Shown piece by piece: positions 3,879 through 34,484 of a DNA stretch of 64,000 nt; within the stretch, counting starts at the first letter, position 1, and the number at the start of each line of letters is the position of its first letter. The position numbers and the translations under genes were made by a program. The notes beneath the pieces were generated by a model. It did not search any database, was not told the origin of the DNA, and saw only the letters and a program-made list of their open reading frames with translations. This DNA is from Zygnema circumcarinatum SAG 698-1b (Eukaryota; Plantae; Zygnematophyceae), in assembly GCA_037447605.1 (NCBI GenBank), contig CM074816.1:573873-637872 (forward strand), read 5' to 3'.

Positions 3879-4742
3879 CAGGCGCTCCTCCAAGCGCAAG
3901 CCCAGCTGGGACGGAGCCCGCCAGCCCAAGGGCGGCCGCGTCCTCCCCCGCCGATCTGTGTCACGTTGTTCCGTTTAGCGTCGTACGGTCGAAGTCAAAC
4001 GCCACAATGCTTGGTCGACTGACTAACTTGACTAAAGGTTGCTTCGTTTTGTTAAGGCAATTCCATGATTCCCATTCCATCATCATTGTTCTATTGAATG
4101 GTTGGCATACAACATTCTTAGAGACCATATCCCAACAAAGCAATAATGCCAATTCGAAAACGCGAGGATATATGCGCACGCAATAATGGATGATACCTCC
4201 GTGATGTTGAATTGGCATTACTGTATTGCTTAGTTGGGATTTGATCTCTGAAAGTTTAGCATGCCAACCTTTTGAACGTTTTGAAATTTTCAACGTTAGA
4301 GGCTACCGATTCGGCAGGCTCACGATCCATGAATGGTCTTAAGAAAGCATCTCTCTCTCTCGCCATCGTGAGATCAATGCCACATCTCTTGCTCTCTATG
4401 TACAGCTGAAAGGTTAAATAACACACATTGCGAGACATGATAGCACACACACCGAAGTAGTGCCTCGTAGCCGCACCAAGTTGCTGACCCCCTTGTAGCT
4501 GACTAGAAGTATGGCTAACCAGGTCAAAGTCAAAGCTGGTCAATTTCTTCTGACCAGCAGTTGGCTAACAAACGACCAGGGGCCTCTCTCCAACTTGCGG
4601 AGCCTCGGGAGTGGAGGGGGTCTCCAATGGCGACCCGCCACGTGACAGGGCTGTACACGTGGCGCGCTCGTGGGAAGAGGCGCAGCGGTGTCCTTGTTTT
4701 TGCAGCGCCGGAGGACGGGAGTGAGAGAGGGAGCGAGCAGCC

Positions 4743-7649
4743 ATGGCGATGCCCGGAAGGAGGGAGAGGGAGAGGAAGAGGGAGAGCGGGATGGGGGCTG
4801 GAGGGAGAGTTCTGGCGCTGCTTTTGGCATGCGGGGGACTGCTGGCAGGGAGGGCGCAAGGGCGGTCGGAGCCTCTGGCTCTGCCGTCGGAGGGGGTCTC
4901 GGAGAGTCTGGGAATGGAGGAGGCTGGCAACGCCACTTCCGTTGCAGGAAGCAACGACTATCCGGAGGTGGGAAACGATGAGTTGCTTCTTCGCGGCGGG
5001 AAAACATAGCATGCATGCAGGAGTAGTACGGTTCTTTTGTTGCTTTCCTCTTTTTTTTCTCGATTTTTATTTATTTATCCGTTTTTTCATGTGTTCTTAG
5101 CTCGCGTTCGAAAAAGAAATATTTCCGAAAAGAAAGGATATTTAATAACTACAATGGGTTTTTTCTTGGCTGATTATTTGGCTGCTTTTTGGAGGTGTGT
5201 TTGGAGGTTCAGTACAGCTATTTCGAGCGCACTTATGCGAGTTCTGGGTGGTTCACATCGCCTCCCATTCTCGACACACACGTGGAGGTGTCAGTGCTCC
5301 CCAAACTGATCAATCAGCGGCTTCGCACTCACTACCCCTCTTCTATCAGCGTCTACGCAGTCCCGTACCCGCGTCCTCTCATCTATTACAACATCATGTG
5401 GACTGTCAATTCCAAAAGCGTATGCACGTCCTCCATTTACCAAGCTTTGCATGTACCATGACTTGCTTCGAGCCGCATTTTCAACTTGGGACTAGAATGA
5501 AGCGAGAGGCAGATCAGACAAGCAAGTAGAAGGGAGGAGTTGGAAGACAATGGTATTTATGTTCGATCAGGGGTTCTGCAGATTGCTTGGAGGCTCAGCT
5601 ACAACGAGGATGGAGTTCAATTTCAGAAAACACTGAACAACAACATCAATGCGGGCTACCAGGCATATCAAGTGAGTCCTTCATAGACGCATGTTCTGAT
5701 TCCACAGGCTCATTTCTTTTGTTTTTGTATTTCTAGTTTGATGTTTGACATACTCGTCGAAGCGTTTCAAATCATGACCTCTCTCCTCATTTTACTGGAT
5801 TTTCTTTGCTTTAGAAAGGCAAAAGAAATGCTTTTTTGTTGAGAAAGCCAAAAAGCCGGTTGTGAAGTCCTATGCTTCCACTGTAGAGAGACGAACATGC
5901 CGTGTATAGAGTACGTTTTGCTTATAATTTAGGCTTGTTCTTTAAAGGGCATGTTGTGACTCTAGACTCCCTCTACTCTGTTGTTTCTCTCCGTGTCTCT
6001 TCTAGATAGCTGATAAGGGACTTCCTGAACAGTTTTTTCAGTTTTACCATCTATTTAAAAGTAAAATTTCTATAATTTGAGTTTTTAAGTCGTCTGAATA
6101 TCATTCTGCAGCAGTTTCGTTCAGAAGTTTGGACTTCATTTCATGAATTGCGGACCCCTGTTCTGTCTTGTTGATGCGACTGCGCAGATCGAGAGTTACG
6201 CATTCGATGACTGGGGAACAATCTACTACGCAGCCATTTTCCTGCAAAAGCAGTCTTGGCCATCTGGAACTCAATGGGACATTGCTTTTGGTTTCCCCAA
6301 TGATGCAAGTTATTGCTGCGGGTCCAACAGCCGTTGGATGCGCCTGAGCTACTCTGTAAACTCATCGATTCCTAAGGAGCCCTTTTCAAATGTGAAGGTC
6401 TCGAGGTCGTTTTGTTTTGAGGGGGGGGGGGGGGGAAAGGAGGGTAACGTTTAGGCGCGTCTGTTCAAAGGTGGACGAACCCTTTTTATTCCTTAGAGCG
6501 AATGACGGTTTGCATATGGGAATGGAAAAATTAGCATGAAAGGAAGGGGTGGTGCTGGCTGTTGATACCAAACCTTTCACAAGGCCAGTGAATTGAAATC
6601 ACATCTATCCTGCTCTGCAATATTCCAGTTAGATGTGAATGGTTGCCTTTGGTTTTTGGGTGCAGGGCTATAAGCCTGTCAGCTTCTCCATTACGGAGGA
6701 CCCCAGCACAAAGCGGGAGTACATTACTGATCTCTGGAATACAGTTGATGTTGGGACGTGAGTGGTTCTCTACCTTTCACAGATCCCCTCACCCCCAAGC
6801 ATCAAATAACTGGTAACTTGTTCCTGTCAGGGTAGCTCTCCAATGCTCTGTGCAGTATTCCACGTCTTGAATGGTATGGTCGAGCGGAAGCATGAGCTCC
6901 AAGTGCATTGGACGATACGTCGATACGTTGCTGCAGTTGTCCTGTTCCACCAGCTCCGTCCTCTTACACGTAGTGAAAGCCCATAGGATGTGAACTAGCA
7001 GCTGCACTACATTATCTGGTTGCAGGTGGCAAGGCGGCATGTCAAAGACAGCCGTGCAGCTTCAGCAGATCCTTGGGTCCCTTGAGAACCTCACACCCGT
7101 GTACATAAAGGGCTACCGTGTCTCGGTGCCTAATGGAGGTCATATGGTGAGTCTGGCTATACTTTCTCTGTTTCGATATCTTTGCCTTAACTTTTGAAAG
7201 ACAGAATTCAATCTCTCCTCCTGGTTGGACAGAGCATGTCTCTCAAATTGCAAACAGGAGATTACAACTGTCCGTAAGTGGACCTACCAGTTAGGAGTAT
7301 GCGTCAGCTTTCATCCTGGAAAGCATCCTGGAGCACTTCTATTCACATCTTGGACCCCCTGAGGCCGAAGAGAGTACCTCCCCAACCGGAGATGCAGGCC
7401 ATTGCTTACCAGCTTGTTCATCTTTCACTGCAGATCTTGTTTACCTACTTGGCCAAGAACATGGATGCTCCTGCCCTGAGCCTCACTACCTCTGTCAGCA
7501 ACACTGCATTCGCAGCCCTTGCCAAGCTAGTAAAGAAGCCCCCTGTGGCCTTCACTTCTTACTTCGTTGACTCGGAAGCGGATTACCAGCAGGCAGGATA
7601 TGGCGGCATGTACACTGCTCTCTGGGATGGCGTTACTACAAACAATTGA
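4743..7649 (+). CDS. Putative secreted protein (about 372 aa) with five polyglycine-hydrolase-like / BTRD1-type structural repeats
   Basis: Seven exons 4743-4967, 5213-5419, 5582-5671, 6188-6355, 6666-6757, 7026-7146, 7434-7649. All introns are GT-AG and phases are compatible (0,0,0,0,2,0), giving one open frame to TGA. Hydrophobic leader GRVLALLLACGGLLAGRAQG follows the ATG at 4791. Recurrent W...GY.P..IS.Y......Y..(I/L)W pattern. Confidence 0.7.
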
Positions 7650-8113
7650 GAAAGGGGCGGTTGGGAAAGGCAGCACCCTCAGCACTTGTACATGTTGTCA
7701 TATAACATTACGTATATGGAACACTCACCTTGGACCTGGCCAGAATAAGGCCCAAACACGCAGGAGCAGGCTCCTCCGCGTTCCCTTCGGACTGCGTACT
7801 ACGCAACATCAGCTGTTGTTTTTTGAGTGGGCTATGTTGGGGCCTATGTTGAAATATTTTTGTTGATATGAACTATGAAGTGACAAGAGAGTTTTGCATT
7901 ATTGAGCAATGGAGCGAGGCAGGGAGAGAGATGGGAGATAGGATGGATGGACGCCGAGGGAGGCAATCGGTTGGGCGACGATGGAAGGAGTAAGGGGAAA
8001 GGTGGCACAATGCTCATCATAGAAGGAGAGGGAGAGGGAAGTATGACCCCATTTCAGAATCACTTTTGATAAAGCTAATCATTTACATTTCGAGTCATCC
8101 TAACAAGACTCAG

Positions 8114-11100
8114 TCATCCATCTGTATCATCTGACAACACGAGAACCTTCCCCCATCCACTCCTATGCGATGTACACGAGAGCCCCACTTGCTCTGCTTT
8201 CCGTCGGGCGATGACCCGATCCTCCTTCACCATCCACTCAGAAAGCTGCAACTGCCCGTCCTCCAATGGGCCGCCCTCCCACCTTACACCCAAGGACCCT
8301 CCATCACAGCCCTCCATAGCTTTTTCTTCTCCCACTTCCTCTCCCGCCTTGGCCCCTCCTCTTACCCCTCCTGCCCTCCCCTGCAGCGCAGGCCTAAAAG
8401 ATTCTATTTGCTCCTCCAAAGCATTTTTCCAGACCTCCTTTGCAACCTTAAGAAAGCGCTGCATGCTGCCTGTTGGCAATGAATTGCCCCCTAACTGGAC
8501 CTCATTCCTGTTGCCAGTTCCATGGTAGTCGGATCCACCTAACTGCAGCAGTCCATGCTCCTCTGCCAGTGGCCCGTAATCTGCACCAAGCCCAGGCATC
8601 CACTGGACTTTTCGGTTTCTATCGAACGACAAAATCTTATATAGCCAGTAAGCAGCTTCTCAAACAGATAGGACCCGAGGCAGCAATTTCCCGCCATAAT
8701 AAAGCTCCATATACCATCAGCAGGGGGGGGAGGGGGGAAGAGGGAGGGGATGGTGGAAGGGGAAGAAGAGAGAGGTGAGTAAACGACAGAGAGAGAGAGT
8801 TAGAGAGATAGAGAAATGGAGAGGGGAGAAAGAGGAAGTGTATTCGAACTCTGAACCCAAGGACACGCATTTGTAACCGGCACAAAACAGCGATCAGAAA
8901 CTGCATGGGAGACATGCATGGAATGATGACATACATGCCAGCTTAGCGGGGTCACGGTGTGCTTCTAAACCATGGAGACCCGCGAACTTGAGGCGTGCGA
9001 CTAATTTTTCAGGACTCTTTAGGCACCATGGATGCGCCAACACAGAAATGCCACCAGTACGACAAACGAGCTGCACTGCCTCCTCGGCCGATATCTCTGC
9101 ACCTCTGAACGATTCACCCACAGACAACTCAATACTTCGCAGTCGTCACCGAAACCAACATGTGCAAGTGACGATCATAGGATCAAGGAACCCTTGCAGC
9201 AAATACACCACATAAACAGACGATCAGCTTGGCGTGTTTAAAAATTTGGAACAAGGCAGGTAAACATGACCAGGTTAAAGTATTCCTTTTCGGGGTAATT
9301 CCTTACTTGGAAGATACAGGTCCATCATCAAAGAGGTATCTGCTGAAGGCTTCCTGAGCTGTTGCAACATAGCCTGCTTCTACAAGTGCTTGTGCTATAT
9401 GCGGCCGTCCTGGGGCACCCTTTACTCCAGCAAGCTGCATCCAATGCAAACTCAGCAAGGATGACTCAGAACATAAATCCACTGTTGCCAGACTGAAGTC
9501 AGTCAGGAGGCCCTCTAAGGTGCCACTTAAAACGAGGAAAAATGTGAAACTCTTAAATGGCTACACTAAAGATGGCTCTGTGTATTTGACAAACCAACCG
9601 ACCTAGTTGAAGTCAAAACAGGCAAAAGCTACGTACATGTACGAAATTGCGTATGAAAAGCGTCAAGGATTGCTCCTAGGAGTTTCTGGACAGGAAACGC
9701 AGGGACACAAATGGCAGCCTTCAATCATTGTTTCGCATCATCCAACAGACAGTGATGTAGACAAAGTTCTCATAGAAATGCCACCCTTGGGCCACTCTCC
9801 CCCTGCCTCACCTCGAGTACCCGATCGAAATTGATAGTTACTCCAAGCATCTTCAGCTTCTCAACCATAGCCTCTGCACGTGCAAAGCGGCCCTTACATA
9901 TCCGTGCTAAGGAGGCAGAGAGCTCCTCCCCTCGGCAAGGCCCCCCTCTCCCGTAGTATCCTAGAATATGAACAGATTGCATCTTTGGTTTTGCGTCCTC
10001 GCTGTATTGACAAAACACATACAGAAAGTTAACTCCCATGACTTGATGCCATCTATTCATCATATAGCATGTTTGACATTCCGATCCTAATCATTGGAAC
10101 AACTGCAGCTGAGAAAAGAATTGAAGATGCAACCTCGACGTCGGTGCAGGCATGATTTAAAGCTTGAGGCAGTCCTGCTAGGAGTTTTCATTTTGTTTTT
10201 TAATTTTAAAGTGAGATCTGGTGTCTGCCTGGAAACAGTCAAATCTCACATAAGGAAGAGGTATACAGAAAGGAAAAGGAACACGGGATATCACCCTAAA
10301 CAATTCGGCCAAGAAGAGTTATACTCACTTTATCCGTTTGTGCCCATGCAGAGATGTTATGAGAGTGCGTGACAGTCAGCCAGTTAAGGTAAGAATTTTT
10401 TTCGAGAAGATGAGCTCACCCGTAGGAAGCCAATGCGCTAATCTCCACTCCGGGAATGACACGAACACCAAACTCAATGCCCGCAGCGAGGGCAGTCGCC
10501 ACACCCGCCATTGTGTCATGGTCTGTTAGGGCAAGAACGCGCACCTGCAAGAAAGGCACTGAGAGCAAAATGACAGAGCCACCTCAACATTCACGTCAAC
10601 CCCAATGACCTTGAAGCAGAGGGCTACCAATTCACCAATTAGCTTCCCCAAAAACGACTTCTGATTACAACTGGTATGCGCTTTAATGCACCAAACTTAC
10701 AGAATGCTTCGAAGGCGATGGAAGGTCTATTCTGACAGAGTGAGGGTACGCTCACGTGAAACAATTATACAGGGAAAAAAGGGAAAGCAGCGAAAAATCA
10801 TTGAAATTTTTTTTAGGAGGAACCGAAACACTCTCAGCCTTGAAGGTTTCGAGTTACTACCCCTTGCTGAGCTGCAAGAGCCACCAACTCGCGAGGGCCG
10901 AGGCGGCCATCGCTGCATGTGCTGTGCGAGTGCAGATCCACCAACACTGGGGCCGACTCTTCACGAGGCATTCTCCCCCATTCCGCCACTCCTCCCTCCT
11001 CCCTCTCCCTCTCTCCCAACTCATCCTCCTCATCCGAAGAAAAACAAGAAGAAGAAGGAAAAGAAGCGATTTCCTTCTTTGACAAGACAGTGCTGCAGAA

Positions 11101-11807: not shown

Positions 11808-14800
11808 ATGGAACAGGAACAAGTTGCGACAGTCAAAGCAAGGACTAAAAGAAATTCTTCAGCAGATTGCGGGTACATAGAGGATAACGAGGCCCCAGTG
11901 GTAAAGAAGCATAGGGTTGAACCTTTGGACAGCTGGCTTCATGCTTTACATGCCGTGAATCCATTTCCAAACATTCAAGTTGCTAATCCAGTTCCAGTTG
12001 ATAATGCTAAGTTGCATACCAAGGATGCTTCAATAAGTTCTGATGTGGAAGGAAACAGATGCACACCAATGAATTCTGCGTCAGAGGTACAATTCAGAAC
12101 TTTTGTGGTACGCAACTGGCCCTTTAAAAAGGAAGGATTAGTGACACCAGTGTTCAGAATCGTCGATTTTCCTAAATCACAGGAGAGAGTATCCTTAGAA
12201 TTCTCAGCAGAGCAAACCGGCTCCATTCTGACGAAGCAATGTTTTGTCGAAGAGAAGCCCTTCTTAGTTCCTCACTTAGACCTCGGTGCTGGAGACATGC
12301 CCTTGTCAGAATTCAACGAGGTGCGAGGGAATTCAGTGAGACTGGCGGAGAGAAAATTAATGTCACCAGTGTTCAGAATCATCGATTTTCCAAATCCACA
12401 AGAGAAAGTATCCTTTGAAGCCCCAGCAGAGGAAACTGGCGCCAATCCGAAGGAGCAATTCTTTACCAATGAGGATTCCCTTTCAGTTCTTAACAAAGAC
12501 TTCGATGCCGGAAGCATGCCCTTGTCCAAGGAGTTGCAAGAGAGTTCGAAGAGCTTGACGTTAATGGTAGGTCAAGCTACAACGTCTTCACCTGAGGAGC
12601 ACGGTCAGTGTAATACAACCATTGATGCACCATCGCCTGACCCCATGGATGCGAGAAAATTGACGCTGGAGGAAACACAGGTATTGACTGAGCAGAAGGG
12701 TAATAGAGATTTTGAAAAGTCTCTAATCAAGGAAGAGCAAGCTGTGAGGTCGCATTGGAACTCTGTGCAATGTGCGTCAGAACAGCGGCCTTCCAACTCC
12801 CTTGTCATTTCGCAAGTCAATCCAGATGGCAGTATTCCCTCAAAGAACAAGGTCAAGAACAATTCTTCCTCAGTTTCTGAAGAAATGCAATTGGTAGTGT
12901 TTTCGCCAAATTGTGGTAGAGAAACGCAAGAAACAACAGGGAAGGAGAAACTGCAAGATGATGATCCACTCGAGCCTTATGCAGCTGAGGAACTACGCAA
13001 GATAAGCCAAAAAGCTTCTTTGGAACATACTGATCGAGATGGCGGTCAGCAGGTCGACTCAGATATGAGGAGGACGAGGACGAGGATGCTGAAAAAGAAA
13101 GCGCGTTGTACAGCAAGCGCAGACATAGATGCGTCCTTGCTGAATGCGATTGTACCTTTTGAAGGCCAAGTAGGTTACGCCTTGGCTGAAATGGTCGATA
13201 TGAACAATATTGAGGCAATGGGTGCCGAAAACTTTGATGAGGAGGAATTGAAAGCGATTGTTGCTGTACAACGCGCTTTAAGAGAGTATGCAGCTCTACG
13301 GAGGCACATAATGCAGGAAGAAGGAGGCGTTGGTGCGAGCAGATCGTACTTGGAAGCAGCAAGCTTGATGCGGAGGAATATGCGAACTGTAAATAATGAT
13401 GCGAGCGGAAATCCACTGATTATCATCGGCAAAGTTCCAGGTACTCGAACTTGGCTGATCTCGTTCTCAAAGTTCGTGAGTTTTTGAGAGGTGTGGTGAT
13501 GCTTTCTATGTGCACACAGTTGTCCGCACAGAGTTGCTATTAAGGCCAGGTAGCTCTTGTGTAATTGCGATCAGTAGGGGGGTTAATCAACCCCTTAGCA
13601 ACAATTGCAGTTTCGTCCTTTTAGCCTTTCGTCCTTGCTCATTCAAATACATAGAGAGAGTCTTCTGTTTGTACAAGGTTTTGCTTTTAGCATTCTTGTG
13701 CCTTAGGCTTTGTGAGCGATTGGATCATTCGCCTTTAATGGGCCTTTGTGGGACTATCCTATTCTTTTCTATCTTTTAGTTTTCGTCATCTTGAATATTT
13801 GGTGGCGTTGACAGGTGTGCCTGTTGGCCAGCAGTTCTATTATCGGCAAGAGCTTTTGATAGTTGGCCTTCATCGACTGTTGCAGGCGGGAATCGACTAT
13901 ATTTCACCAAGCAAGAATAAGTATAAAAAGACCATTTCTACTGCTGTGATTGCATCAGGAGGGTATGAAGATGATCTCGACCAAGGAGAGTGGTTTGATT
14001 ACACCGGGCAAGGGGGAAACAATTACAATGGTGATAAAAAACAAAGTTGCGATCAAGAGCTAAAGCGGGGTAATCTAGGTTTGAAAAATAGTTGTGACTT
14101 AGGATTACCAGTAAGAGTGATTCGAGGAAATAAAGAGCCTAATTCTGATTCAGGAACTGTGTACACTTATGACGGGTTGTACAAAGTGGAGTCTTGGCGT
14201 GAAACCGTAGGTGGCTCTGGGCATAAAGTGTACAAGTTTCGTCTAGTGAGATTGCAGGGGCAACCCCCTCTCAGCTCCCCGACAGTGGAGTTTGTGCGCA
14301 CATCATTGAAGAGCAACTTGAAGAGTTCAGAGCGAAGAGGTGTTGTCGTGGAAGATATTTCAAACGGTTTAGAAAAAATCCCAATTTGCTGTGTTAACAC
14401 AGTTGATAATCCTCCTGTGCCACCGCCGCGATTCACGTACATCAATAAAGTCAATTATTCAGACTCGGTCGAGCTTCAACCTCATGAGGAGGGATGCAGT
14501 TGTAGGGATGATTGTGCATCAATTGTAAAATGCACCTGTGCAAGTGGAAATTCCCAAAGTTTCCCTTACACAAAGAGTGGACAGCTGGTTGAAGTGCTGC
14601 CAGCAATTTTTGAGTGTGGAACTATGTGTCGGTGTAAAAGCAACAAACAAGCTTGTCCAAATCGAGTCACACAGAATGGCATTCGGTATCGATTGGAGGT
14701 TTTCAAGACCAACTCTAAAGGGTGGGCTGTGCGTTCTTGGGATGCAATTCCTTCAGGTGAGTTAAGCTTTAGATGAGGTTTAGAACAAGCTTTAGATAAA

Positions 14801-21200: not shown

Positions 21201-24200
21201 AGCAGCACCAACATCGAGGTGAGTGCTCTGTGGAAATAGTGACGGTGGGTTTGCATGTCGTGGAACTTCTAGGAGGGGTAAGTCATTTATGCAGCGTAGA
21301 CATTGAAGAATGACCGAAGACTGAAAATGGCAGGAACATTTCTCTTCTATCCTTAAGAGTCGGATTGGGAAGCCTTCATCACTGTAGGTATTCACCAAAG
21401 CTATTGGCATGAAGACTTTTCCCTTCTCTGGGTCTGTAACAGGGTATTATCGTTAGTGTATGAAAGTGAGCATCATGGGGGAACCCGTCACAGTAGGCTC
21501 AACCAAGTGAAGGGGCGAACCTCTGTTATGGATGGAGGTTAATTTACTTAGAAGATTGAGTGAACGATCCTGTTCTTGTAGCTTGTGGCCACTATAAAGT
21601 GTGGGCTCGTACTATAGGCTCTCGGCAGAGCGGCTACTCATTATGCACGGGATTTGTGATCAAGGACGTTTTTTTGATGATGAAGACATCACAAAGAGAA
21701 TTTAGGTGCTGTTCGTTAGAGCATTTTACTCCTTTCTAGTTCCGTGGCCTAAAGTCAGAATGCGAATGGGGAGTTCTATCTTGTCAACTGAATCCTTACC
21801 ATGTTGCTCGCTCTTAGTTCTTCCCTTGGTGATACGGCGAGTGCATCCATGTCCGTCGTACTTCAATGTTGCTCAGAACAGCATTCACAGATGCTTTCCG
21901 TGTTCTTAGTTAAGCTTCTTCGTGCTTGACTGTCCTGACATCAGATTCTTGCATCTTATTACAGAGTGACTTGCTCAAGGAATTGGCACTGATGCGGAGA
22001 AAAGCGGCAGACGCAGAACAGGCACGAATAGCGGCAGAAAAACGCGCAGAGCAACTCATGACCGCAGCGGACCTATCTTTGCGTGAGGTGGAGGAACAGT
22101 CTAAGAAGCGGGAACTGGAAAATGCAGTGTTGATTGAAAGGGCCACTTTAGAAGCAACTCGGGCTATGGCCTCTGCTGAAGAAGCCCGCAGAATAGCAGT
22201 TTTGGAGGCCCAGAAAACTGAGCAAGCTCTCACTCAAGCTGCTATTACACGGTCAGCTTTGGAGCATGAAGTACGGAAACGTGCAGAAGCGGAACAAAAG
22301 GCTGAAAAGGAGATGGAGGCTAGACGGCAACTGAAGCATTACAGGCAGTACAGCTGGGAGGAACTCACGGTAAGTGCCTTTCAGTGTTTTACTTGGGTGG
22401 GAGTGGGAGAGAGAGAGAGTGTGAGATGAGGAGAACAAGGGGGGATGTTCCTTTATTATTATCCTTTATTTTCCTGTTTCAGCAATGTTCCTTTATTATT
22501 ATTGTTGCCATTCTTTGGTGCCTACCGCCTTACACTTCCCACTGGTCATGTCTTATTCCTTTGGTTCTTAAGAATCAGTAGCTGAACCGGTGTGGATAAT
22601 ATAAGTTGGAACAAAGTCTCTCCCCTTGTTCTATATCGGAAACAGTGTGGATCATGTAATGGTCGAGTATTTGTTGTGCCCTTTATCCTCCGACAGCTTA
22701 TAGTGGCTGCTCTGCTTACCCATCAGACGTTGTTTTTATGCAGGCTGCAACTGATAGTTTTAGCCATGATAGGAAGCTTGGGGAAGGGGGCTTTGGCACC
22801 GTGTACGCGGGCACACTACATCATACCCCAGTTGCAGTGAAGGTTTTGAAAAACACAGATGCACTGCAAGCGGCAAGCGAGTTTCAACAAGAGGTGGGTG
22901 GCTGACCACTAGCACCACTTTGCAATGCTAAAAGTAATGATCTTAGCTTGCCAATGGAGGCACCTACCTTGTGATGTTGGAGTCGAACTGCTGATTGATT
23001 TGATCTCTATATGAGAATCATAGTATTCTGTTGCTCTATTCAACCAAGGAACTAGTGAGTTGCCGCTTCCGTTGTGTCTTTTTTTCTTTAGCGCGTATCC
23101 TTATTTGCACTGCTATGCCCCTTTGGACATTTAAACGTGGAATGCTGCCTGCCCCTAGAACAAGAAAGGGGTACGCTACGTTGCATATTACCGATTCCTT
23201 GAGTGTGAGGAGCTGTGTGATCCCCTTCGTTGATTGCAAACCATCATACATGTACTCCCTTTGATAAAGTTGCATAGGCTATGGAGTGACTTCGGACCAC
23301 TTTGTCAGTCCTTTAGACAGCGGCAACCCATTTTTTTGACAATTTTGTGCTTATGCTGTCCCATTGCAGGTTGAGGTGCTCGGACAGATTCAACATCCAC
23401 ATATGGTCATGTTGCTTGGATGCTGTCCTGATAAATACTGCCTTGTTTACGAATTCATGGCTAATGGGAGTCTGGAGGAGCGTCTTCTGTGTGCAAACAA
23501 CACACCTCCCCTTCCTTGGTACATGCGGTTGCGAATTGCCGCGGAAGTTGCTTCAGCTTTGCTCATTCTGCACACAAGGCCTGTTCCTATTGTGCACCGC
23601 GATCTTAAGCCGGCGAACATTCTGCTTGACAAGAATTTTGTAGCAAAGCTGGGGGATGTGGGCTTGGCTCGCTTGATGCCGGAATTAAGCGACAATCAAA
23701 CCTACATGCGTGAGTCTGTTCCTGTAGGAACATTTGCGTATGTAGACCCCGAGTTTCAGAGAACAGGGGAGTTTGGACCGAAGTCAGATGTGTATGCTCT
23801 GGGCATAGTGCTTTTAGATCTCCTCACAGGTAGGAAACCAAACGTGTATGAGCACTTAGAGGATGCTGTTGACAATGGGGACATGGAAAAGCTCGCCAGT
23901 TTTCTGGACGAGAAAGCGGGGGATTGGCCGGTGGAGGTGGCAATGGAAGTTGCTCAGATTGCAGTGAGATGTTCTGAGATGCGTCGGAAGAAGCGGCCTG
24001 ACCTAGAGCAGGATGTTATGCCGCCGCTGGAGAAAGTTCGTGATATTGCAGCGAAGGCAGAGGACGAGGAGATGAATGTGAGGCGAGGAAGGCCCTTATT
24101 AGGGGATGCTCCCAGCAGTCTGTTCTGCCCCATAACTCAGGTGAAAAGGCTCAGTCTGATTCCACCTTTGTTGATGTGGGACCATCCTCATCTGTGCGTG

Positions 24201-24911
24201 CGACGGCGATGGGACACTGCGATTCTGCTGCTTCCATTACCGCTGCCCGCTTGACTGGAGTCCAAATAACCAGAAGTGATGAACTGTTGAATAGAAAGTG
24301 GAGAGTGGAAGGACAATGAGGGACTGTGCATGTGATGCTTGCATTTGGAGTTGGGGAAAAAACAGAAGGACAAAGATTGTATGCCTTTCTATTACTCTCG
24401 TAGGTCGTCAGGGTCCAATTCTCTCTATTCCTCGCCAGCAGTTGAACCATAGCATCTCTCGGAATGCCTCAATATTGGTCGTTAAACAGACGCTTTTCGG
24501 CTTTAGTAGTCCTACAGAGCTTCTTTTCTGGCAGCAGTTTTTCACAGCACCGTTTAACCAGTCCGTGAGAACTCTCGCTTTAGTTTCCGTCTTGGTTTCA
24601 GACGCTTCCTCACTAAGCCCGCTGACAGTTACACTGACTAAACTTCTATTATGTATTGTCCTCTGCAGGAAATCATGGTCAATCCAGTCCTGGCTGCTGA
24701 CGGGCACACCTATGAGCTGATAGCCATTCAACAATGGCTGGAAAACAATGACAGGTCGCCTATGACCAACGTGACGCTGCCAAACAAGGATTTGGTACCA
24801 AATCATGCTGTCAAGTCTCTAATCCGTGAGTGGCAAGAACGGAATTCTCGAGCCCTTCATTCTCCGAGCTTGAGTTTCAGCTTGAGCATGAGCAAAGGTA
24901 GGTCCAAGTAA
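18270..24911 (+). CDS. USP-like N-terminal domain / coiled-coil / Ser-Thr kinase / U-box protein (PUB33/34/35/51/52-type, RLCK-IXb)
   Basis: Exons 18270-18423, 18913-19022, 19393-19514, 19643-19941, 20428-21218, 21965-22369, 22744-22893, 23370-24140, 24669-24911 with consistent phases. USP-like VVVAVN...AVRWAL...LIFLHV; kinase LGEGGFGTVY, VAVKVL, HRDLKPANILL, DVGLAR; U-box FCPITQEIMVNPVLAADGHTYE...PNHAVKSLIREW. Confidence 0.93.
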
Positions 24912-29567: not shown

Positions 29568-32500
29568 TCACCTGCCTTCATCGCTTTCTTGCAACGACCC
29601 CCCGGCCGACCTTGGACTGAGCATGGTCCCATCCCCCTCTCCCGCGCTTTGGAGGAGCTTTGTGATCGCATCTAGAGCCCAGTCTCTGAACATTGCATCG
29701 TCAAGTGAGGCCCTGCAGAACAGAAACACATCCCATGCATCAGCACACATCATGATGTCAGCTCATGTCACGTCACTGGGTGATGACGACACGCCTCACG
29801 ATGTCAAGACATCTCAAGCAGTCGATGCATTTCACGATGTAAAGACATCACATGATGTCAGCACATCTCAACACACATGGACATATCCTTTGGCCAGCGT
29901 GAGTTGAAAAGTAAAAAGGGTGCGGGTGCCAATAATAAGACCAGAATTTCTTGTGAAATAAAGAGAGGAATGGTTCAACTGTCACTAAACCAAACAGAGA
30001 CGGCATGATACTTACTCCACCACATTGAAAGCCTCCTTCGCCCTTTCCATGCCGACATCAGCAATCTGCTGCAGCTGCCTCGAAGCATAGTGTCCCCTGC
30101 TAGCCACCTCCTTCAGGAAATGCATATCCAGCAGAAACTGCAAATTTCACCCGCCATCATCCCCTCAGAATGCCGCAAGCCCAAAGCATTCACTGACTCC
30201 TCCTTGCTTGAAATGACCTGAAAGCTCCCAAAACCTCGCGTTTTTCACCCCACTAAATCATAAAGAAATTGACAGAGGAAGCAACTCGCCATCGCTATCC
30301 ACTTTAAAGTGATACAGTCAACACTCCTGCTCTGACTTGCCACAAAGTGCTGCATAAGCAGACATCCAAGCACGAAGATAAAATCTTTACTCAGCTTCAT
30401 CCAATGGAATCCAACAGGAAGTTAATCACAGCTTCCAACCGTTACGTTCATAGAGCCGCTTAGCCCCATATGTCCCCCATTCAGCATGTACCGCCTGAAC
30501 CTATTTCCAAAACAAGTTGTGATTCCATCCAGGGGGAGAAAATTACCTGTTGAAGGCCAACCGGGCCAACAAAAAAGCGGCTATCTTCCCACATGTTGTC
30601 GTGACACACAAGTGTGAGAAGAGCGATGGCAAACTGGGTCAACAGCTGCAGGACCATTCTGTCGCGGCCGGCCAACACTTCGAATCCGACTCTTGAAATG
30701 ATTTGTGCTGTCCAGAAGAAATGCTGCAAAAAAAATAAAGGGAAATCGAGACTTCGACCATAAATTCCCTAGGCAATTTTTCAAATAGTAGAATTGGAAT
30801 TCCTCCAACTGGAGATTATAATGGTCATATCCACTTACTTGCATCGGCTGTGAAGGCATAGGATGCTGTCTCCATGCATTGGGGTCGCTCTCTACTTGGT
30901 CCATATTGAAATACAACGATGGTAGCACAGGCTCGTGACCTTCTTCATCAGGGTATAGCAGATCTGTGGCTTTCTGTGTGCAGAATTGCAACCGTAGACC
31001 CTCGGCTTTCTTTTGCAGTGACTTTTTCCATGATTGAAGCTGAGTCCTGCATAAGACGCAACAATGTTGCTTTCAGCCGGTCTGGAAGAAGAACATGAGG
31101 TCAATTTCCCCATGTACGAGCACTACATGAACTTGAACCTCAAGTGCTGAACCTATCATGGATACTGTATTGTATTGTATTGACATTGTCAGTTTTAACG
31201 ATGCTTGAGAGTTGCTGCACCGAGGCAAGTTGGCGGTAAGAGAAGGGCTTTCTAGGTATTGCACTATTTCGCCCCCTATCTAACAACAGAAATGCAATCC
31301 TATGCCCCAATGTCATGTGAAAGAAGTTTTCTAATGAAAACAGGATCGTGAAGTCGCAAGATGCGTACCTGCTTGACAAAATAGCAAGAGAACACACGTG
31401 AGCAAATGAAGTTGGCCAGTTACCCGTTTCAACGGCTTACCTTAAAGCAGCTTCTGCCCCAGATGGAACTGCAGATGCTGCTCTTCTAGAGTCATATTGA
31501 CGACCCGACCGCAATGCTTCGATTCTAGAAGGGGGTGCAGCAGGCCTCTCCGAACCTGAGGTCAAGCGAACGGCTAATCTTGGCAGTTCCTCCGCAAGAA
31601 AGACAGCATTACAAATTAATGCCAGCTGCTGCTTCTCGTCCACAGCTGTTTGTATATTGTATGCCACTTCAGTGGTGTCCCATAATGTATCTTCTTGATT
31701 GAGTGCCTTAAGGAGAATTGCCATATACTGATAAAATAGATCCAATAGGCCTTCCAGAGTCGCATCGCCGAGGTTCATCGTTACAATGGGCCCCACATCC
31801 TCCAAAAATTCCTGGATAACCGTAGCATCCATCCAACATACTTCAGTTCAGCCCATCCTGCTTGCGAGATATGCAAAAGATACAAGAGCACTTAACTGAA
31901 ACAGTTTTTTGACTCGACATTGCAGGGCACTACTGACAATTCCTACACATGAATGTCTTTAATAGCGAGATGATCTCCTCAAAATGTCGTCAGTCCAATC
32001 TGGAAGACTCAGGAACTACAATAACTATATAGGTGTTCCATGATACGTAACATCACTTCCAAAACTGACAATTTATCCAAAATTGGGCCAAGTATAGACA
32101 GTGCAAAAGTCAAACGACTTCACATCTTCAGTTGTAATGCGACATGAAAAAGAAGCAAAGAAACAAGCACGGTTTTAAGAAATACACCCATGGTGTTGTG
32201 TATAAAAGGAGAATCGCTCATCATCTTGTGATCAAGAGTCTTCCCTTTCGTGGGAATCTCCTTCCTTATCATTTACCACAATTGCGGCTGAGTAGCAAAT
32301 GGGGTTCTTGCCTGTTGAACACAATAATAATGAAGGACACATCTCTAACAGGATCCCCTCACGTTCATTAAGGAGGGTGGCACAGACAAGCAGTTTTAGC
32401 TCTCTAAACGACAAGGTAGGTACAAGTCACACCTGCACCATCGAATATAGTCGTTGGGCACTTGACGTCAGCCTGATATTGGAAGGTGCTCCAACCGACG

Positions 32501-34484
32501 ATCTCCCCATTCGCCCTTGCACAGCACTGACGTTCGGTTGCAAACGCCAATCATCGATGGCTGCCACAGCTCTCACGCTGTCTAATATTCTTTCGAGGTT
32601 CCCATCCAAAGCCTTTTCCACACAAGGGCGCACCAATCGAGAAAGAACGGGTGTAAGGGACAACCCCTGCTCTTCCAGCAGTTGGCAGTGCCCCATAGCA
32701 ATCTGGACACATTCTGCAGCTGAACGCAAGGCCCCAGATTCTGCTGCAAAGTTCAATACATACTTCCTCAAAAGTCCTGCACACCACTCTGCTTCACTGT
32801 GGGCCCACAATACGAGCTCAGATGAATAAGCAGCTTGATTTCCAAAAACGAGTTCAGAATCTTTTGCTGCTTGAGAAATCGCTGAAAAAACCAGTTGGCA
32901 AACAGTAGCCGTGTACGACCCACTATATGATGACCCGCTGGGCCGCATAGGACGAATCTGAATCCTCAATCGCTGTCCATGAGAATTTAGCAAAAGCGTA
33001 TGCGCACGGGCACCGTCTCCTAATCTGTTCAAAGCCGCAACCGCTGCCCTTAGTTCGGAACCACTGACTGATGGCTGAAGAGCTACGTCTGCCAGCTGTT
33101 CAGTGAGTTCTAGTCTCCGCTTTGCTAAAGCCTCTGTTAAAAATGATAGTCCTCTAGGATCTAATGTCCCACTCTTAACTAGTTCTTCCCCCTGTTGGAG
33201 CAACCGCAATGCGCTATCCACCTTCCGTTCAGCAAGCGCTACATCAAGAGCGTCAGGGAGTGTCCGCAACCGAATTTCAAATTCTTGATAATCGGCATCC
33301 TCATCTTCTGAATAGTCTGAGATATCCTGCAAAGTGGGCCTAGAGTCTAAAACAGCTGGATTTTCCACCAGACTGTGTATGAGGCTGCATTGCGAAGCCA
33401 ACAGCTTCCCCATCGAACGAAGCTCGCCTTCCAAATCAGAAATTTCACGAGCACACCTGCAGCGAATAAAGGGTTTTTGCAGCGTGCGCCAATAGAAATA
33501 AGCTTCATGGTCACGCACATTTAGCTGCTAACCAAATATTCGAGAAGGCTTCCAAGTTTTTGAAAATTAAGCAAATGCTTTAATTACTTCAAAAGTAATA
33601 GTTGTCGAACATCGAGAACAACATCGAAAATGAGTGCCAAAAGGTTTGCCTCCTTCAGCAGAGCAATAGGTAGAAACATGGAGGCGGAAAGTCACTGTTG
33701 AAGCTGTCAAACAATTCTCAAATAATATGCCTATCCTTTTACACATAAAACCACCAAGTACTCATCGAACATCGAATCCACTTAAGGAACTGTGACTTTA
33801 TTCCTTCCTCCAAAAGAAAAATAATGGATACAGCAACTGAAACACCTACCGGATAAATTCTTTGTAATTTGCGAACACACTCCTTTGCATTTCCTGAGCT
33901 GATGCTCTCTTGTGCTCGGAAAGTTCTACGCAAAGCCGCCGGATGTTCTGCAAGAGCATAAAACAACGTCAAACACCATATTTTGTTATTTGGACTCACA
34001 TTTGGTTTACATTTTCGAACCGTCCCGTCTTACGCCAGCTCGCGCAGACGCAGCCAAGTGCGCTTTTCCAGCTGTTCACGAGCCGTTATCCCTTGTAAAG
34101 TCAGCGCAAAAAATGGTCCTATTTCGCGTCCTAGCACACAAGGTCTGGCAACATAATCTGCAGTCGTAAAAAAGGGCTAATTTTCCAACCTTTTACGCTT
34201 CTTGTAAAATGCGACATGGTTAAGGTAAACGGAAACAAAACAAAACAATTTAAAAAGGACGGCGATACTTAGAGCTTATAGAGAAGTGAATGTTGTCGCA
34301 CCTTCTCGCTCATTGATTGGCATTTGGACTGAACAAAAGCCTCCGGACTGAAGGAGTCGGATTCAAACAACTGGATCTCTTCCCCGAGCAGCGTGTCGCT
34401 GCCAGCTGTTCGATGCCCACTGCTGTAGCCATCGGCTGGGGGACCTCGCCGAGTCGGCTTCAGAGAGCGACTGGAAGACATCAT
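29568..34484 (-). CDS. EXO84: Exocyst complex component EXO84 (EXO84B-like)
   Basis: Exons give FESDSFSPEAFVQSKCQSMSEK, NIRRLCVELSEHKRASAQEMQRSVFANYKEFIR, LDVALAERKVDSAL, ALQPSVSGSELRAAVAALNRLGDGARAHTLLL, LRSAAECVQIAMGHCQLLEEQGLSL, GPVGLQQFLLDMHF, DDAMFRDWALDAITKL. The junction into the last exon is less certain. Confidence 0.92.

Follow-up and report, generated by a model that had tools for sequence, protein, structure and literature searches.

The BTRD1 structural repeat (Pfam PF17660, "polyglycine hydrolase-like, structural repeat") is known from fungal polyglycine hydrolases, namely Fvan-cmp (PDB 7TPU), Bz-cmp and Es-cmp. [quoted passage not shown] Protein-protein interaction or exosite binding was suggested for this domain by the authors of the crystal structure (PMC9912923). 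In bacteria, BTRD1 domains are found ahead of beta-lactamase-like, M23, C1, C70 and astacin hydrolases and also of Ser/Thr kinases, and the best 50 AlphaFold-database matches of the 7TPU N-domain are divided between bacteria (30) and fungi (20). The same fold has been described in the major ~30 kDa proteins of the Chondrus crispus tetrasporophyte cuticle, which are secreted, stand-alone and similar to 7TPU at a template modelling (TM) score of 0.73 (bioRxiv 10.64898/2026.01.12.698930). Here we describe a gene at 4743-7649 on the forward strand of a 64,000-nucleotide stretch of the Zygnema circumcarinatum SAG 698-1b genome (contig CM074816.1, positions 573,873 to 637,872; hereafter, the window). 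We consider it likely that its product is a secreted, non-enzymatic BTRD1 barrel protein with a binding or scaffold role, representing a family of the Zygnematophyceae.

Relatives of the window protein were found by a phmmer search with exon 2 (69 residues) against 1.84 billion cluster representatives, which returned 10 proteins, including full-length sequences of 359-481 residues. The named matches come from Closterium, Netrium digitus and Mesotaenium endlicherianum only, all of which are Zygnematophyceae. Identity to the window protein over its length is 67% for P0011, 56% for P0001, 47% for P0003 and 36% for P0005, the Netrium member. An automatic PF17660 label is already attached to some of the Closterium relatives. 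We found no published description of a zygnematophycean BTRD1 family in the literature.

The preliminary description of this locus, made from the sequence, had read the gene product as five units of ~50 residues related to PF17660. Homology to BTRD1 is now supported by three independent lines of evidence: Pfam matches, profile comparison and fold. First, PF17660 matches repeat 2 in nine of ten family members at E<=1 (best E 1.1e-10), and both P0005 (38.8 bits) and P0003 (33.5 bits) score above the gathering cut-off of 23. Second, when a family alignment with the spliced window protein as its first row was compared by hhalign with 28 stand-alone bacterial BTRD1 proteins, the two aligned over 269 columns with their repeats in register (probability 97.1%, E 7.6e-11). 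The bacterial sample was assembled from loci picked by a tandem Y-A-A-I-W motif pattern, from which open reading frames (ORFs) were then extracted; four of these proteins were checked, and each contains five PF17660 units at 360-425 bits. Sequence identity is 10-20%. The bacterial repeats align to algal repeat 2, the only one in which the motif is kept, and the algal family has diverged strongly in repeats 1, 3, 4 and 5.

Third, an AlphaFold2 model built on the family alignment was obtained for P0011, which aligns to the window protein from repeat 1 to the C-terminus with no insertion or deletion and a constant offset of +13 residues. The model shows exactly five E-H-E-E units, which coincide with the five units first proposed, and its confidence (predicted local distance difference test) is ~70-89 over most of the domain and ~47-67 in repeat 5, with a predicted TM score of 0.66. 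In a Foldseek search, its single significant PDB match was 7tpu_A (E 7.9e-7). VIA-align superposed model residues 79-354 on 7tpu_A residues 13-263, that is, on the whole N-domain, with Z 22.8 and a root-mean-square deviation of 2.8 Å over 240 residues; no other PDB entry exceeded Z 5, the next best match being at Z 4.8. The resemblance to the polyglycine hydrolase N-domain that had been anticipated is thus found in the model of this relative. At the sequence level, a PDB search with P0001 gave no significant match, and a search with the family profile placed 7TPU second at a non-significant E of 0.92.

The five units of the window protein show no significant sequence similarity to one another, as is also reported for the N-domain of the fungal enzyme (PMC9912923). 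Pairwise BLAST among these units detected nothing significant, and the best hhalign value between repeat sub-alignments was E 0.006, although several pairs were nevertheless in register. The repeats are therefore structural and are not detectable as sequence repeats. In the ESM Atlas, the nearest clusters by fold comprise bacterial proteins in which the domain is fused to beta-lactamase-like, M23, C1, C70 and astacin peptidases, plus stand-alone proteins of Ascomycota. Since stand-alone versions are common in bacteria and present in Ascomycota, the algal family constitutes a new lineage of a known domain.

The gene model was rebuilt from the ORF list of the window and splice signals, with exons joined by script, and comprises seven exons totalling 1119 nucleotides (372 codons plus stop). 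The six introns, of 162-516 nucleotides, all have GT..AG ends; five are in phase 0 and intron 5 is in phase 2, and their G+C content is 0.38-0.50 versus 0.44-0.66 for the exons. When contigs from public RNA runs were aligned to positions 4600-7900, all six junctions were present in spliced transcript contigs (four runs from three studies), which skip 4968-5212, 5420-5581, 5672-6187, 6356-6665, 6758-7025 and 7147-7433 and are otherwise identical to the window, with no sequence differences at the gene. Word depth, which is a poor measure of expression level, ranges from 39 to ~1550 for spliced contigs versus 4-24 for intron-retaining ones. Given the contigs with all junctions and this contrast in depth, the locus is transcribed and its introns are efficiently spliced, as the phase-consistent seven-exon model required.

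The transcript extends 5' to at least 4717, where a contig of run X3 begins, giving a 5' untranslated region (UTR) of at least 4717..4742. No ATG occurs at 4717-4743 ahead of the first in-frame ATG at 4743, which lies inside the transcript. Exon 1 (4743..4967) holds the start codon, a signal-peptide-like leader and the beginning of an acidic linker, and its donor (4967/4968) is used in the spliced contigs. Exon 2 (5213..5419) encodes a conserved lead-in, Y-x-Y-F-E-R-x-Y-x(2-3)-G-W, which follows the linker and precedes the five repeats, together with repeat 1 (residues 88-140, nucleotides 5249-5407). Repeat 2 is divided between exon 3 (5582..5671), with the strand and helix of its first half (residues 145-174) and the canonical BTRD1 motif, and exon 4 (6188..6355), where it ends at residue 197 (nucleotide 6256). 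The 3' part of exon 4 begins repeat 3 (from residue 204, nucleotide 6275) and includes the loop F-G-x-P-x-D-x-S/T-Y-C-C, the codons of C217 and C218 occupying 6314..6319. The second half of repeat 3 (residues 231-255, nucleotides 6666-6740) lies in exon 5 (6666..6757), which ends in phase 2. Exon 6 (7026..7146) contains repeat 4 up to its second strand (residues 262-301), including an N-L-T sequon conserved by both of the closest relatives. The last strand of repeat 4 (to nucleotide 7463), repeat 5 (residues 316-366, nucleotides 7476-7628) and six further residues are encoded by exon 7 (7434..7649), at the end of which stands the stop codon (7647-7649). In the 3' direction the transcript continues beyond 7900, so that the 3' UTR seen in the contigs covers at least 7650..7900.

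Several further features of the transcribed region were recorded. Contigs that begin in exon 7 run up to ~880-1435 nucleotides past 7900 (window 7650 to ~8780), which would reflect either a 3' UTR of more than 1 kb or overlap with a convergent gene; a 172-codon ORF without a Pfam hit is present on the reverse strand at 8114-8632. Intron 4 includes a run of ~17 G (6415-6436), and that part is covered by no transcript contig.

The absence of a catalytic domain, as first proposed, is borne out by these data. Six residues separate repeat 5 from the stop codon, which the transcripts confirm; the window protein therefore has no catalytic domain and is not a polyglycine hydrolase. A Beta-lactamase Pfam match was found in none of the algal family members.

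At the other end of the protein, residues 1-40 (nucleotides 4743-4862) resemble a signal peptide, with a long charged n-region, a hydrophobic core (VLALLLACGGLL, residues 23-34) and then AQG|R, at which cleavage may occur; no second hydrophobic stretch is found in the window protein. Hydrophobic leaders are present in all full-length relatives and are plainer than that of the window protein, so far agreeing with the export leader predicted at the outset. The first 16 codons (4743-4790) are highly charged (MAMPGRRERERKRESG), and a second Met, which could also serve as the start, then begins a textbook signal peptide. The DNA at 4743-4790 is a GA-rich low-complexity run, and 4754-4797 was skipped as repeats in read mapping.

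The leader is followed by a linker of ~45 residues, which is acidic and poorly conserved, is modelled as disordered in P0011, contains an N-A-T sequon and is probably glycosylated. Within the repeats, C217 and C218 are the sole cysteines of the mature protein. The pair is invariant across full-length relatives and lies within a family-specific loop inserted in repeat 3. Such a loop could represent a ligand or cross-linking site, with the Cys-Cys pair acting either through a vicinal disulfide at a binding site or through intermolecular cross-linking.

How long the gene has been present in this lineage can be judged from its introns. The gene of Closterium sp. NIES-68 contains five introns, all of which coincide in alignment column and phase with window introns 1, 2, 3, 4 and 6; the phase-2 intron 5 of the window gene has no counterpart there. 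Because five introns are shared, the gene was already intron-rich before these lineages split. It is an old resident of zygnematophycean genomes, and has long been a nuclear gene with introns, in line with the initial view of a now intronised repeat module.

Duplication was also seen in the family. No tblastn paralogue is present within the window. In Closterium sp. NIES-68 (BQMA01000342.1; 195-5311 and 6001-12800), a second, diverged copy is located just upstream of the P0015 gene, the introns of which contain many duplicated exon fragments, and in other Closterium strains tandem copies have been fused by annotation into products of 635-954 residues (P0013, P0014 and P0019). Two adjacent Mesotaenium endlicherianum models, ME000434S07340 and ME000434S07341 (P0002 and P0017), comprise N-terminal and C-terminal parts that cover the leader, repeat 1 and the start of repeat 2, and the end of repeat 3 through repeat 5, respectively; they are probably a single gene split by annotation.

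Outside this family, the searches returned little. When 5.8 billion proteins were searched by word seeding with P0001 and with two family profiles, up to E 10, nothing came back beyond members of the family and environmental fragments that bear no label. Scans of bacterial and archaeal genomes and of JGI metagenomes for patterns of the family profile detected no close relative, and the ESM Atlas feature search produced no more than weak leads (<=0.79), which pointed to BTRD1 and DUF7477 clusters. There was no land-plant protein among the phmmer and word-seeded search matches, although such searches are blind to very distant kin.

The patchy distribution makes old horizontal gain the more likely origin, and on balance we lean towards acquisition from bacteria or fungi that predates the divergence of the sampled Zygnematophyceae. 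The horizontal acquisition put forward in the preliminary description is consistent with that distribution, but the searches identified no donor, and secreted proteins of this fold also occur in a red alga. The alternative is vertical inheritance: the barrel would be an ancient extracellular domain of eukaryotes or Archaeplastida that changed past recognition in sequence and was lost in most lineages, including land plants. The failure of profile searches and of bacterial and archaeal genome and metagenome scans to find a donor, the divergence of every algal repeat other than repeat 2, the age of the intron-rich structure, the red-algal cuticle proteins and the inclusion of animal phyla among Atlas neighbours labelled DUF7477 all favour such a history. 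However, no relative outside the Zygnematophyceae was found among the 1.84 billion representatives or in profile searches, the diversity of the domain, as sampled, lies in bacteria and fungi, and the red-algal proteins are reported to be confined to one family, so that vertical descent is the less probable account.

What the protein does can be approached from the company that its domain keeps. The fact that BTRD1 precedes many different secreted hydrolases, as well as kinases, points to a targeting or binding module rather than a catalyst, and these domain partners, together with the precedent of the Chondrus cuticle, lead us to read the window gene as encoding a secreted binding or scaffold protein. 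In the product, a signal peptide and a disordered, probably glycosylated linker would lead into a single five-repeat BTRD1 alpha/beta barrel, and the protein would act outside the cell without enzymatic activity. It would most likely serve the cell wall or mucilage as a module for binding or scaffolding, and the repeat-3 loop with its Cys-Cys pair would be the candidate site for ligand contact or cross-linking. The Netrium member (P0005) has an extra C-terminal transmembrane helix and a short tail, and this membrane anchor places the barrel outside the cell.

A number of points weigh against this reading. The seven exon translations had no Pfam match at E<=10, the pieces being short and repeat 2 being split by an intron, and the two nearest relatives score just below the PF17660 cut-off of 23 (P0011, 19.6 bits; P0001, 21.8 bits). 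The fold evidence comes from the predicted structure of a relative and not of the window protein itself, and secretion is suggested by inspection of the leader. Distant relatives in land plants and other algae were sought with no more than a 69-residue query and word-seeded profiles. Finally, we know of no ligand, partner or phenotype for any BTRD1 domain.

Among other functions, the barrel could bind bacterial wall peptides, such as peptidoglycan stems or Gly-rich bridges, in which case the secreted or anchored protein might tag, sense or agglutinate bacteria somewhat as plant LysM proteins do. This possibility draws on the bacterial fusions, whose partners act on peptidoglycan or Gly-Gly bonds (beta-lactamase/PBP-like proteins, M23 endopeptidases and Ser/Thr kinases), on the cleavage of a polyglycine linker by the fungal enzyme (PMC9912923) and on the resemblance of the membrane-anchored Netrium member to a receptor ectodomain. 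However, the argument is one of domain association alone, Pfam detected no signalling domain in the Netrium tail, and the algal repeats differ widely from the consensus of the bacterial ones; we therefore consider microbe binding unlikely. A bolder combination is more doubtful still: that the Zygnematophyceae possess in this family an abundant receptor of the cell surface or matrix, captured from bacteria or fungi before their radiation, which binds bacterial wall peptides or a wall polymer through its Cys-Cys loop and was lost in land plants. If this were true, the protein would contribute to the handling of the microbiome, or to the building of mucilage, in the closest algal relatives of land plants.

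The preliminary description had also raised the idea of a decoy, which would inhibit microbial BTRD1-bearing hydrolases by competing for their docking site. The algal barrel does have its fold in common with the proposed exosite domain of the polyglycine hydrolases. No evidence, however, points to anything made by this alga as a docking target of the fungal N-domain, sequence identity to 7TPU is only ~9-10%, and bacteria, in which a decoy would make little sense, commonly carry stand-alone copies. The idea is thus left without support and is highly improbable in comparison with a binding or scaffold role. That the locus is a chance ORF or a bacterial or fungal contaminant of the assembly, for which nothing speaks beyond the affinities of the domain, is refuted by the six spliceosomal introns seen in RNA-derived contigs of three studies, by plant-type neighbouring genes and by orthologues with the same introns in other Zygnematophyceae.

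The neighbourhood of the gene is an ordinary streptophyte nuclear context. On the forward strand, large ORF pieces at 13748-14776 encode SAD/SRA and Pre-SET domains (a SUVH-type histone methyltransferase), and a protein kinase domain lies at 23364-24254; on the reverse strand, an Exo84 C-terminal domain is encoded at 32427-33518.

These results do not overturn current views but annotate a previously unnamed protein family. The BTRD1 barrel recurs widely in the secreted hydrolases of bacteria and fungi and is represented by one crystal structure, and a stand-alone, strongly transcribed and intron-bearing algal copy, conserved across the Zygnematophyceae, offers a eukaryotic system in which to study the domain apart from any enzyme. 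The family is also one more candidate for an ancient gene gain in the lineage sister to land plants. Taken with the red-algal cuticle proteins, it hints that the fold serves as a building block of the extracellular matrix in algae.

Compared with the systems described to date, the algal protein shares with the N-domain of the fungal polyglycine hydrolases its five E-H-E-E repeats, barely alike in sequence, which close into an alpha/beta barrel; the fungal enzymes are secreted, and so, probably, is the algal protein. It differs from these enzymes in lacking their C-terminal beta-lactamase-like protease domain with its Ser-x-x-Lys nucleophile, and the Cys-Cys loop of repeat 3 is recorded for the algal family only. 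The stand-alone bacterial BTRD1 proteins, examples of which occur in Nostoc, Leptothoe and Rhodobacter-type genomes, consist of a signal peptide plus five PF17660 repeats in 280-320 residues; they agree with the algal protein in architecture and length, with an export leader and no catalytic domain, and profile-profile homology extends over all repeats in register. Their repeats, however, are near-identical copies of the consensus W-x-A-R-H-G-x-T...G-Y-R...V-S-G-Y...Y-A-A-I-W, which algal repeat 2 alone keeps, and the algal gene differs from them in its six introns, its long linker and its Y-C-C loop. Among the bacterial loci surveyed (L006-L092), proteins of ~316 residues with a signal peptide and five BTRD1 units were strikingly frequent in Nostoc genomes and metagenome-assembled genomes, and the internal repeats of these Nostoc proteins are near-identical to one another.

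Two eukaryotic groups complete the comparison. The Ascomycete stand-alone proteins annotated as "polyglycine hydrolase-like structural repeat" (ESM Atlas, ~285 residues) are similar in size and were compared by fold only, with a TM-score of 0.79 normalised on the fungal model. The Chondrus crispus cuticle proteins are secreted algal proteins of ~30 kDa, with the same barrel and abundant in the extracellular matrix, but they are reported to be specific to the Gigartinaceae and are likened to the zygnematophycean family by fold only. In summary, neither the fold nor the Pfam family nor the stand-alone architecture is new; what is new is the recognition of a conserved, expressed and intron-bearing family of the Zygnematophyceae with strongly diverged repeats and a distinctive Cys-Cys loop.

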